Below are positions 971-32,500 of a DNA stretch of 64,000 bases, piece by piece. The notes under the pieces were generated by a model, which ran no database searches, was not told where the DNA came from, and worked only from the letters and a program-made list of their open reading frames with translations. The stretch spans positions 124,001-188,000 of the forward strand of contig CDMY01000677.1 in NCBI GenBank assembly GCA_001179505.1, read 5' to 3'. Position 1 is the first letter of the stretch; each line of letters opens with the position of its first letter. The position numbers were made by a program, and so were the translations under genes. This DNA comes from Vitrella brassicaformis CCMP3155. Taxonomy: Eukaryota > Protista > Chromerida.

Positions 971-2150
971 CTATCCCGCACCCCCCCCTCTCCGCCTTCC
1001 ACTCTCTTCTGACCTAACAAGCCTCGCGGCCTCATCATTTTCATGCCTATGTCGGCTCTCCCGGCCCTCTATCAGCCCAGACACCCCCCTGCCCCCCTCT
1101 AGCTGTCCCACATGACCGTCGTCGTCTGATTCCTCATCGCCCGAGTCGTCGGGGAGCTCGTCCTCGCTGTCGACGTCACTCTCGCCCTCGTCGTATCTGG
1201 TGTCATCTCTGTTGGGCATGAGGTTGAAGGCGGGGTGGATGGGCTGCCGGTCGGTGTACACGTAGCGGCCGGCTGATGGGTCCCACGACATGGCCTCAGA
1301 TCGATACCTGTCGTGGAAACACGACACACACGGCAGGGCGGTGTAGTGTAGTGGCTTTGATGGCGGTCTCCGCTGGTCTGTCTGTCTGATCTGTTGCCAG
1401 ACCAGACCTGGGTCTCTTAGCGACTCGTTTGGGCATGCTGAAGACGGGTTTCTTGGTGGGCATATGGCGCTTGAACTCCATCAGCATGCCGTCCATCTGC
1501 GTGATGTGGTGGTACTTTGGCACCGGGGCCACCCGCCAGGCACACAGACACCGGTACTGCGAGGTGCCGCAGCCCGACCCGCACCTGGGGCCGCACACGC
1601 CCTCCTTCTGCCACTTGAGGCAGTACTGGTGCCGATTCAGCCGCTTGCCCTCCAGCCGTGCCATGCCGATCGTCAGCAGCGCACGGCCGCCATTGCGCCA
1701 GTCGTTGGGGAAGCGAGGGACGAGCGCACAGGGGACCTGAGCAGTACAGCCGACAATAAGGGACAAGAGGCGAGGGCATACCATGCCAGTGCAACAGGAA
1801 TCAGCACGCGCCCGAGTTGAGTGGTCTTTCTCTCACCTTTGTGGTGGGGTATACGGGGTCATTCAGCGGCTTGCCATGGATGTGCTGACCTGATATATCC
1901 AGACATCCACACAGCACAGAGCAGACACACACGAAGGCGTCAGTCACCCGGTAGTTCCCTCCATGGATCTTTGTTGCAGAGAGCAGGCCTCAAAGCGTCG
2001 GTCGTGTGGCATCCGTCCAGCATTCATTCTGCGTACGTACCTCTGTAGCCAATGGGCCGTCTGCCAGGCGGGCCCTTGGGAGGCTTGAGCTTGATGACTG
2101 TCTTGGTCACCTCCTGACGAAACGGACTCGAACTCATCTCTCATAAGCAG
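971..2150 (-). CDS. Hypothetical multi-exon protein with a Cys-rich middle exon and an acidic C-terminus
   Basis: Coding-like exons (about 1400-1740: HQYCLKWQKEGVCGPRCGSGCGTSQYRCLCAW; about 970-1310: DEGESDVDSEDELPDDSGDEESDDD) separated by typical introns. Start not resolved. Confidence 0.5.
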
Positions 2151-28600: not shown

Positions 28601-29063
28601 ACATGGGACAGACACATGGGGGAGGAGACACGGCGGCCACTGAACAATGAGTGGTCTGTCGCTTTCTCGTCCGCCCTGCATGTCGTGTAGGATTGGTGCA
28701 TATGTTTGTGTGTGCACATGGCTTGTCATCTGTCTTACTGGTCCTCTCGCAGGAGACGAGTGGTCAAGAGAGATTAGCCCGAAGACACTGATCGATTGCA
28801 TTCTCTCAACCGGCCCCGAGTGCACTGTGTGTTTGGTTGTTCCATGAATGTCTGTACCATACAATGTCATGTGTGGACACTGACATGTTTGGGTGCAATG
28901 CATTGCTACCTACGGGGTCTGTTCGTGTCTTGTTTCATATCTCGTAAGTTAATCCGTTCCGACCGGGCCTTTCGCAAGTGTCTTGCGGACAGGCTAGCGC
29001 TTTCCATTCCAGATGCCTTGTGCTGGGGTGGAACATGGTGGAGACGAGTACTGGGCAAAGAGG

Positions 29064-29122
29064 ACGCGAGGCGGGATCGAACCCGCATTGTGTCGACGCG
29101 ATTGCAACTGTGCTACTCGCCC
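29064..29122 (-). ncRNA. 59-nt tRNA-like element, copy 1 (A box + B box, reduced anticodon arm)
   Basis: GGGCGAG-TA-GCA.CAGT.TGC-A-ATCGCG.TCGA.CACAAT-GCGGG.TTCGAT.CCCGC-CTCGCGT; A-box-like TAGCACAGTTG; B-box GGTTCGATCC. Confidence 0.55.
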
Positions 29123-29314
29123 ATGACGCCGGCGGGTGGTCCACTTGGTGACACGGAGCGACGGCATGTATTTTGCCTTGATTTCGGGTACTTTCGGGAC
29201 TGCCTGGTTTGCTGGGAAGCACGCGCTTCGGTGCCGCGGACAGGCTAGCGCTTTCCACTTCAGATGCCTTATGCTGAGGGAGAACACAGTGGAGAGGGGT
29301 AGCGGGTAAAGAGG

Positions 29315-29373
29315 AGGCGAGGCGGGATCGAACCCGCATTGTGTCGACGCGATTGCAACTGTGCTGCTCGCCC
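29315..29373 (-). ncRNA. 59-nt tRNA-like element, copy 2
   Basis: Same as copy 1 except C8 and a fully paired 7-bp acceptor stem GGGCGAG/CTCGCCT. Confidence 0.55.
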
Positions 29374-29517
29374 ATGACGCCACGGGTGGACCAGTTGGTG
29401 AGACGGAGCGACGGCATGTATTTTGCTTCACTCGTCCAGCGCTAAGCTTCGGCCCCACACACCGCGATCTTCAGTTTTTTCCCTCTCCCTCCCCACCCCG
29501 AACTGAGAGGTTTTGTC

Positions 29518-32500
29518 ATGAATAACTCCTCTCAGATACTTCAAATGCTGGCCTGCATATCCCTCATCCTGCTTATGCTCCCTGCGGCCCTTGCGGCGGC
29601 CGCTGGTGGAATGGCACTCTCATTTGACGGGGTGGACGGTACTTCACAAATGGGGTGCGGCCGCATTGGTGGCTGTGTGTTTTGTGCACTTTGCAGACTT
29701 CCTTTATCTCATCGAAAGTGGAGGAGGCGGCATCGACTTTCTGCAGACCGATTTCACACTGGTAAGCCTGCATATTGCATTGTCTCTGCAGACCATGGCC
29801 CCTTGTGTTCCTTGGCATTTGCAGGAGTTTTGGTACCAGCAGCGTGAGTCGCAGGAGCAGAACGACATCGAGAAACAGGTCATCGTGCAGCAACAGGCCC
29901 TCTCTGGGGAGCGTATCATCGTTATTAAGGCCAAGTGGTTCCAAATCGGCTTCGTGTCGACGCGCTTCGGCTTTGACGGCGACTACGACCCTCATCATCG
30001 GGCCGTGACATGCGCTCTCAATGCCACGCTCACTGGGCAAGACTGCAAAATCTATGTGGATGGAGCGGCTCCGCCGGAAGCCCTCTTCTCTGAGCACTTT
30101 GAGACGCCATCCATCCCGGCGGATGTGCAGTCGTACCTCACCTTCGGCACTCAAGTCGACGTTTCGACCAAGGACCGCACCCACTTTAACCTCTTCAGCG
30201 GTTTTATTGATGAAGTCCGCTACTGGAAAGGCGTCCGGTCACAGGCGGATATCCAGGCAACAATGTACATGACGGGATCCACCGTCGCTTCGTGGCTCGC
30301 CGCTAATGGCAATGTGCCCCCGCTCCATGCGCAGTGGTCTTTTGATGATCCTGACGAGGCAGGGCTGATCAGGGAAGGCGGCATAACGCTCAGCCGACCT
30401 CTTTATGAAGAAAGTCCCTTCTCATTGAATGGAGGGCATCACTTTGTTCTGGCTCGCGAGGACGTCTTGAAGGAGGAATCGCTGCCAGCGGGCCTCGGGA
30501 TCATCACTAACGGCGTTGTGTTCCGGTTGGAGACGAGCGACAACCGTCTGGGCATTCAGATGCAGCGACTTGGCGGGGTGAGGGAGTATGTACCTGTGGT
30601 GGGCGGCGAGATGGTTGCTCTGGCGTCTGTGTATTCCATGGACAAGTATTGGGTGCAGCCGAGCGGGACCGGTGAAGAGGAGGGGTTGGGCATGACCGTG
30701 ACGCCCTGTGGGGACGGAAGCTGCTCAGTCAGGGAGGCCAGTGTGCCGTGCGTCGTGCAAGTCAAGGGCGAGACACCGCCCATTGCCGGCGGCAGCTACG
30801 TCGCTCGCCTCTTCGGCAAGTAAGTGTCCGCAGCCAGCCCATGAACAACCATGCTGGCAGTGTACGTGTGTGTCCTCTTTCAGTGATGGTTATCTGACTG
30901 CCGCTCAGCTGCCCCCGGGCCGTGATGTGACGGTGGGTAGTGAGCGCTAACCTCATATGCGGCTGTCCTGTCTGTCTGTCTGTATGTGTGTTTGCGGCCG
31001 GCCAGGTCGAAATGTGGTTCCACTGGCACTCGCTGCCCCTTGGCTACACGTGCATTTTCTCACTGGATCGGTCGGTGGGATGGAACGGCCACAAGGTGTG
31101 TCTCGACGGCGGCAACGTCATATTCCAGTTTCGCAAGGACAGCGGCAAACACACACTCATTGTCAATGAGATGCGGTAAGAGCGTGCCAGACAGAGAGAC
31201 ACAGACGCCGACTCAGTATGTTCCTCTCCCTCCTCCTTGCTGTATGTCAGCACGACTGTGCCACAGCACATCGCATTCAGCTGGGCGCTGGTCAACAAGA
31301 CGGCGGACATATGCAATCCAGCGACACTCTGGGAGATCAGGTGCAGACAGCCTGCTCATGGTCGCATCAACACTTATTGTGTGTGTGTGAGCGGACAGGG
31401 TGTACCAAAACGGCGTCCGTCTGCCGGTGTCGCAGGTGGACAACCTCGTCACAGCACACAAGTCCCACAGGAATCAGCTGAAGCCTGAGTGTGACCTGGG
31501 AGAAACGCAGACCGCCCCAACGTTCGGCCAGGTACACCAACATCACGATCATTTCGTGGCGATTCTCGTCCATCTTTCTCCCATCCATAAAGGATTGGGA
31601 CAAGGGCGGCACAAGTGGTCTGAAGCCCTCAGATTTCATCAGCGGTGAGTACAGCGAGATCAGACTTTGGAGGGGCCAGCGGACGGACCAGGAGATCGCC
31701 GAGAATTGGAACAAGCGGCTCACAGGTGAGAGAGGGAGAGGCGGCAGGAACCAATCGGCGTGTATGGCTGTGTCTCTCTCTCTGTGTGAATGTGTGAGAA
31801 ATGAAGGCAGGGAAGGAAACCTTTATGTATACTACCCAATCACAGGTGTGCACTGTACCTACCGATGGGGTGGTAGATCCACAGGTCTATCCATCCATAT
31901 GTATACCGAGCCGACCGACACATCTGACCACGTGGCTCTTCCTCTCCTCCTTCTCAGAGGACGACATGCTGCGCATCCCCAGCGAGGTATATGCAGACTT
32001 ACATCAGTAGACAGACGGGCAAAGACACCGGCCATGTGTGTGCATTGGTTCATTCGTAGTCCAACGAGAGTCCCCTGATCAACTATGCTGCAGCCACAGG
32101 GGCAGAAATGGACGGCACACTCTGGTGCGTGTCCTCGGCATCAAGCTGCAAGCCATGGCTTCGCACGGGATTTGACGTCACCCTCGGACGAATGCCCGAA
32201 CTGGCGGTGGGCGCAGCCGGCCGTGAGACACCGGAGGCGACATCGGATTTCTTCCTGTCTCAGGGCTATCCATATTCCAATGACGTGCCCTCTGCCTTCA
32301 GAAAGGCCCTCACCTTCCAGTCTTCCGACCCTGACAACATCTCATTGCGGCCGTACACGCCGCAGCTCGACGCCATCACCGTCAACGTGACTCGGCTGCC
32401 CGACAGCAGCTGCGGGTCGGTGTGGAGTGAGGACAGGGCCGACGGCACAAGCGTGAAGGTGGAGACGGAAGGGCACACCCACGATGACGCCACGCACCGA

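Follow-up and report, generated by a model that had tools for sequence, protein, structure and literature searches.

The stretch of DNA analyzed here (the window) comprises 64 kb of Vitrella brassicaformis contig CDMY01000677.1 (C677; positions 124001-188000), and the genome that we have searched amounts to 72.7 Mb in 1064 contigs. The window carries two direct repeat units with sharp boundaries and a period of 251 bp (Table 1). Direct repeat and alignment thus bear out the initial annotation, which was made from the letters of the DNA and described two units of about 192 bp at this distance. The 59-nt spacer between the units and the outer DNA on either side cannot be aligned. Genome-wide, the 192-nt unit was found only in these two copies, and the 3′ half of the core only at the two window sites. 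A protein-coding repeat was ruled out: copy 2 contains a stop, and the units lie in different reading frames because of the 251-bp period. Downstream of the window heads, no convincing hairpin and no snoRNA boxes were seen. The end of unit 2 is separated by 91 nt from the ATG (29518) of a plus-strand gene. This gene has a long ORF, a clear signal peptide at its ATG and a weak Laminin_G_3/concanavalin-like match (E 0.004, below the cut-off).

Table 1. Coordinates of the repeat units, their elements and related loci. Positions are those of the window unless a contig or locus is named.
Feature	Position	Strand	Description
Repeat unit 1	28985-29176	−	192 nt (54-nt upstream part, 59-nt tRNA-like core, 79-nt downstream part); direct repeat and alignment
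Repeat unit 2	29236-29426	−	191 nt; 90% identity with unit 1
24-nt block, unit 1	29153-29176	−	−54 to −31 from core; identical in both units
24-nt block, unit 2	29403-29426	−	As in unit 1
tRNA-like core 1	29064-29122	−	Sequence, fold, family models R1 and R2
tRNA-like core 2	29315-29373	−	Sequence, fold, family models R1 and R2
A-box-like motif, core 1	29105-29115	−	TAGCACAGTTG; read from sequence
A-box-like motif, core 2	29356-29366	−	As in core 1, first base C
B-box motif, core 1	29073-29084	−	GGGTTCGATCCC; T stem and loop
B-box motif, core 2	29324-29335	−	As in core 1
Trailer, core 1	29053-29063	−	CCTCTTTGCCC; possible weak Pol III terminator
Trailer, core 2	29304-29314	−	CCTCTTTACCC; possible weak Pol III terminator
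Secreted LamG-like gene	29518-30823	+	Signal peptide, long ORF
Family locus, window	C677		2 copies, 251 bp apart
Family locus	C238 (L086, C238:120363-123383): 691-770, 947-1022, 1455-1528, 1905-1982		4 copies on the same strand, spaced 256, 508 and 450 bp
Family locus	C718		1 copy
Family locus	C446		1 copy
Family locus	C650		1 copy; near-identical twin on C218
Family locus	C770		1 copy
tRNA-Tyr	L086 2182-2252	opposite to C238 array	62.5 bits
U6 snRNA gene	L021 1501-1608	−	106.6 bits; identical to the next
U6 snRNA gene	L022 877-984	−	106.6 bits

Alignment of the two units revealed 20 differences over 192 columns. Read 5′ to 3′ on the minus strand, none of them falls in the 24-nt block and five fall in the next 30 nt. 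The 59-nt core differs at two positions, the number given by the initial annotation, namely 8 (T in copy 1, C in copy 2) and 58 (G in copy 1, C in copy 2). Another 13 differences are found within 57 nt from the start of the downstream part, whose last 22 nt contain none. When the differences were shuffled in a permutation test, their clustering gave p = 0.03-0.05. The core is thus better conserved than its flanks between the window copies, as had been proposed, but the effect is marginal and the last 22 nt of the unit are equally identical. Since the two units also have in common the 54 nt located 5′ of the tRNA-like head, with the likeness stopping at −54, they arose by DNA duplication. The pair is best read as one member of a tRNA-like family that was duplicated locally in tandem.

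The acceptor strands of the cores read GGGCGAG and CTCGCCT on the minus strand. Core 2 forms all seven acceptor pairs, including a G1-U59 wobble, and carries C8 in place of T8; core 1 has T8 and forms six of the seven pairs. Because G58 faces G2 in copy 1, a full 7-bp stem exists only in copy 2. The 7-bp stem ascribed to the element by the initial annotation therefore holds for copy 2 and the accompanying T8 for copy 1. In all other respects the cores agree. As described earlier, they contain a 3-bp D-like arm and a 5-bp T stem (GCGGG/CCCGC in both copies) closed by a 6-nt loop, TTCGAT. The 4-nt D-like loop, CAGT, is devoid of the GG that makes the tRNA elbow. Only 9 nt separate the D-like arm from the T arm; the arm with a TCGA tetraloop that had been placed here can be seen, but it contains a C-A mismatch on the minus strand. 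When the cores are compared with canonical tRNA (RF00005), the 7-bp acceptor (6/7 in copy 1) and the 5-bp T stem are present, and the anticodon arm, the 7-nt T loop (one nucleotide short here) and G18 G19 are all absent. The folding energy was not clearly better than that of shuffled sequences, either for the cores (z from +0.08 to −1.7) or for the units as a whole, with minus-strand z values of +0.75 and 0 and plus-strand values of −1.2 and −2.1.

ARAGORN predicted no tRNA in the 64-kb window, and Rfam returned no relevant match at the gathering score in the window or at E ≤ 10 around the elements. The window copies are thus recognized by neither program, be it as tRNA, mascRNA or vault RNA. 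In particular, mascRNA/menRNA, to which the cores had been likened, finds no support as the family they belong to: RF01684 gives no match on the elements at E ≤ 10, and its sole match at this level, at 29599-29664, lies within a coding ORF and reaches 15 bits (E 9.7), the cut-off being 42.5. Vault RNA (RF00006) had no Rfam match in the window or at the family loci. The Vault repeat (PF01505) was not detected in the genome, with control genomes also being silent, so that absence of the protein is not proven. Candidates such as snoRNA, SL RNA, telomerase RNA and tRNA-Sec were rejected, there being no C/D or H/ACA boxes, no shared exon, no telomere template and no UCA anticodon.

A covariance model of the window core (R1) found weaker matches outside the window that are tRNA-like. 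A second covariance model (R2) comprises nine sequences, and a search with a pattern of the B-box block retrieved the same closed set as R2, the reversed-pattern control giving zero matches. By R1, R2 and the B-block pattern, 11 copies are present at six loci of the genome, nine of them at five loci outside the window. The non-window members have in common with the window cores the motif CAATGCGGGTTCGA(Y)CCCGCC and the A-box-like TAGCACAA; their acceptor helix is another one (GGAGGTG/CGCCTCC), and their middle is longer. A search with the 5′ side recovered the known members together with three extra matches at control level, which have no T arm and were dismissed as chance. One of the C238 copies was called an aberrant tRNA-Ser(GCU) by ARAGORN. 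With the Rfam tRNA model, C718 stays just short of the cut-off of 29 (25.9 bits), and none of the other members reaches E ≤ 10. The earlier view that the element is derived from tRNA is supported. Pattern scans of metagenomes revealed no relatives of the family outside the Vitrella genome.

The C238 array adjoins a genuine tRNA-Tyr gene on the opposite strand as well as an assembly gap, and more copies may therefore be hidden there. The C650 (L082) and C770 (L089) loci show 80% identity over about 2.3 kb and may be segmental paralogues or a low-copy element. The real tRNA closest to the window cores is tRNA-Arg(ACG) on C69, with a similar acceptor stem and trailer. It was not retained as the parent: trailers of this type are common among Vitrella tRNA genes, and the likeness of the acceptor stems may be due to chance. 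The only structured match in the metagenomes was a bacterial tRNA-Gly(UCC) with D-arm and T-arm motifs in common, which hints that the ancestor of the family may have been a Gly-type tRNA. Flanks of the window units looked similar to those of other members by eye, but not significantly so when compared with shuffled sequences; the ideas of a shared TATA-like box, of a shared CAG-ending pyrimidine tract and of an intron were dropped for this reason.

Could such copies be the cargo of a mobile element? The tRNA-like part would then be the head of a low-copy SINE-like retroposon or of a small non-autonomous Helitron, its boxes being conserved because an active master alone gives rise to new copies. 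The C718 and C238 copies lend themselves to this idea, since they have in common the head and about 80 nt of pyrimidine-rich downstream body but not the upstream DNA, and the homology starts at the very first base of the head, as it would in copies of Pol III transcripts. The genome is, moreover, rich in Helitrons. However, there are 11 copies only, and the subfamilies other than C238/C718 have nothing but the head in common. Neither a 3′ tail nor a target-site duplication was visible by eye at C718, C446 or the window, where element ends are poorly defined. The 54 upstream nucleotides common to the window units speak for duplication at the DNA level. Helitrons are marked by a 5′ TC, a 3′ CTRR, a subterminal hairpin and insertion between A and T; the window units run from GCAAAA to CCTGTCCGC on the minus strand and from GCGGAC to ATTTTGC on the plus strand, and a subterminal hairpin is lacking. 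An internal CTAG is followed by C and is not preceded by a hairpin. We consider mobile cargo a long shot. A high-copy SINE, which counting the copies was meant to reveal, is at odds with the 11 copies and the lack of intermediate matches.

The body common to C718 and C238 contains a pyrimidine-rich block of about 35 nt (ACGTCCTGTCGCTTGTTCTGTCGTGCAG-like) located 10-45 nt 3′ of the head (L097 1415-1500, minus strand, and each L086 copy). Between C718 and C238, this block is as conserved as the stems of the head.

The members of the family differ widely in what they conserve. With its 5′ part, the B-box motif overlaps a 13-nt block, AATGCGGGTTCGA, that is unchanged in nine of ten aligned copies. 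The mean pairwise identity of this block is 0.98, compared to 0.79 for the A-box stretch, 0.82 and 0.66 for the two acceptor strands and 0.53 for the middle, the one-time anticodon arm. The middle also varies in length, and the total ranges from 59 to 91 nt (71-91 nt in non-window members). Part of the invariance of the B block comes from the searches, which give weight to this block; since the search with the 5′ side recovers the known members, it is not only a product of the method.

Three of the seven acceptor pairs are changed on both sides (A-U to G-C, G-C to C-G and U-G/U-A to A-U). Acceptor cells of the alignment are paired in 92.8% of cases, and sliding the partners by 1-3 columns lowers this proportion to 49-66%; none of 500 shuffles reached the observed covariation score. 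The doubly changed pairs, all three of them, set the two window copies apart from the other members and may thus stem from one lineage split. Such a split would have required six substitutions in the acceptor helix, all of which keep the pairing.

The same alignment decides between the strands. On the tRNA-sense strand 67 of 70 acceptor cells are paired, as opposed to 55 of 70 on the antisense strand, 12 cells being G-T. As G-U/G-T pairs fit the tRNA-sense strand only, it is the minus strand of the window that is structured, which settles what the initial annotation had left as uncertain. The plus strand, for which the slightly better fold of the units and a TTTT end could be adduced, was ruled out by these pairs. 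That the acceptor helix covaries across the family points to structure at the level of RNA, on the minus (tRNA-sense) strand. A B box that hardly varies, an acceptor helix with covariation and an unconstrained middle are the combination expected under selection for TFIIIC binding or T-arm structure as well as for the acceptor/T minihelix, rather than for decoding.

It is against this pattern that a reading of the copies as inert relics has to be weighed. According to this reading, a tRNA gene, probably of Gly type, was duplicated a few times and is decaying, and the window pair is a functionless deletion pseudogene that was copied in tandem. The window form, the shortest of all, is just what the loss of most of the anticodon arm and of one T-loop base would leave of a member. 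One acceptor pair of copy 1 is broken (G-G), Rfam and ARAGORN pass both copies over, and the conservation of the core above its flanks is, as mentioned, marginal. Damage is evident elsewhere, too: the C650 head has a 20-nt internal duplication, the C770 head has a replaced middle and a shortened T loop, and an acceptor mismatch is also found among these copies. The earlier statement that a deletion pseudogene does not explain the pair was therefore too strong. Yet neutral decay should strike the B block as hard as the middle, which is not the case (98% vs. 53% identity), and every one of the six substitutions in the acceptor helix is compensated. Searches at either end of the element returned no partly decayed copies; with R2, there was nothing between E = 7e-6 and E = 1, and hence no visible tail of them. 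Overall, we regard wholly inert relics as unlikely, while the window copies, which are the most reduced members, may be partly decayed.

The A- and B-box-like motifs noted in the core are confirmed by the sequence and by the family alignment. Inside the A-box-like motif, the 8-nt AGCACAGT aligns with AGCACAAY of the other members. The CCTCTTT reported to follow the core is found in both copies; the T run 3′ of the core on the minus strand consists of three T only, and four T in a row do not occur after it. The trailers of genuine nuclear tRNA genes in this genome include TTTTGCC, GTTTGCC and TTTCG, several of these genes having only three T. CCTCTTTGCCC is in keeping with such trailers, which makes weak termination by Pol III right after the core plausible, and the trailer may serve as a terminator.

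At the nuclear tRNA loci L034-L074, the T runs are often very short (TTTG, TTTCG, TTTTGCC), and Pol III termination in this organism may thus need only three or four T. Elsewhere in the assembly, C991, C1054, C847, C166 and C14 (L025, L026, L030, L029 and L049, respectively) carry tRNA-Ile(GAT)/tRNA-Ala(TGC) pairs with encoded CCA. Such pairs are arranged as in bacterial rRNA operons, and these short contigs therefore look bacterial. C467 contains many tRNAs and looks like a plastid genome.

The 24-nt block was correctly described as an identical sequence upstream of each copy. We have found it nowhere in the genome outside the two units, which rules it out as a common genomic motif. It contains AAAATACA, and its plus-strand reading ends in TTTT. 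The AAAATACA sequence could be a TATA-like element or a TFIIIB site, with a start about 20 nt before the core. A promoter common with U6 snRNA genes was excluded: the genome has two identical U6 genes, with T5-T6 terminators and upstream regions unrelated to each other, and both regions are unrelated to the one considered here and contain no 24-nt block.

Boxes of this kind may also be kept as DNA. They could function as TFIIIC sites, in the manner of a tDNA-like boundary or of "extra TFIIIC" sites, or as promoter modules on the side of a gene, the RNA being irrelevant. That the B box is the most conserved part of the family agrees with this possibility, as do the location of the window pair 5′ of the start codon of the secreted LamG-like gene and the lack of a strong terminator on the minus strand. 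However, a site recognized in double-stranded DNA leaves unexplained both the compensatory upkeep of the acceptor helix and the G-T pairs, which work on one strand only. In addition, the genes neighboring the different loci have no protein similarity to each other. A role at the DNA level only is, in our estimate, improbable.

We favor, with a probability of roughly 45%, the reading that the window pair is part of a small family of tRNA-derived Pol III units that do not decode and whose RNA retains the acceptor/T minihelix; it is the nearly invariant B box, the covariation of the acceptor helix and the unconstrained middle that speak for such a family. Within it, the pair would be a locally duplicated member from which the anticodon arm and one T-loop base were lost. 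TFIIIC would bind the internal B box (GGGTTCGAYCCC) together with the A-box-like motif (TAGCACAR), and TFIIIB would assemble upstream, in the window perhaps on the AAAATACA sequence of the 24-nt block. RNA polymerase III would then transcribe the minus strand and terminate, possibly with some read-through, at the few T of CCTCTTTGCC. On folding, the acceptor and T arms of the transcript would form a minihelix of 12 bp, the region by which RNase P, RNase Z and the CCA-adding enzyme recognize a tRNA. The predicted product is stable and about 59 nt long and, having no anticodon arm, would be unable to decode.

Several known systems resemble this arrangement in part. The mascRNA and menRNA are vertebrate tRNA mimics cut from MALAT1 and NEAT1, respectively (PMC11693755, PMC8457004). 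The Vitrella elements are like them in their size (about 58-61 nt), in the 7-bp acceptor stacked on a T arm, in the reduced D and anticodon arms and in being non-decoding. They differ in that they appear to stand alone, with A and B boxes of their own and in tandem arrays, and in that RF01684 does not match them. Both vertebrate RNAs form the 3′ end of a long nuclear Pol II RNA, from which they are freed by RNase P and RNase Z before CCA is added, whereas the Vitrella elements occur in an alveolate alga.

With tRNA-derived SINEs and tRNA pseudogenes, the family has in common a head related to tRNA, in which the internal Pol III boxes are conserved, and, in the C238/C718 subfamily, a body unrelated to tRNA right after the head. 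The small number of copies, their local arrays with a period of about 250 bp and the maintenance of the acceptor helix by compensation set it apart from both. In the TMER genes of MHV68 and in plant tRNA-snoRNA dicistrons, tRNA-like Pol III units can drive a downstream RNA and release it via RNase Z. The Vitrella units, too, are clustered and are predicted to be tRNA-like Pol III units that are not aminoacylated. Unlike in those systems, no convincing downstream hairpin or snoRNA boxes accompany the window units, and the 80-nt body is conserved only in C238/C718. In trypanosomatids, divergent snRNA genes make use of the A and B boxes of tRNA-like elements (PMC4950102, PMC2695483). There, as possibly here, degenerate tRNA-like sequences are kept for their Pol III boxes; however, Rfam revealed no divergent small RNA gene about 95-100 bp upstream, either in the window or at the family loci, and upstream conservation in the window ends at −54.

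A broader proposal, which we put forward as doubtful, is that chromerids contain a previously undescribed kind of stand-alone Pol III tRNA mimic, in which only the minihelix and the internal promoter would be under selection and the anticodon arm could vary or be lost, down to a form of 59 nt, the size of mascRNA. Such RNAs might act as regulators or decoys by engaging a tRNA-binding protein or the machinery for tRNA processing, CCA addition or export, and would have arisen independently of vertebrate mascRNA. If the RNAs are made and processed, Vitrella would provide a second, independent case of retained non-decoding tRNA-shaped RNAs. The family would be small and tractable, with natural variation indicating that the acceptor helix and the T arm matter and that the middle does not. 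Should the elements be unexpressed, they would be ordinary tRNA-derived relics, and they would call for caution when tRNA-like sequences are annotated in the Vitrella genome. If, on the other hand, the RNAs are made and processed, the purpose of tRNA mimics would become testable in a relative of apicomplexan parasites.
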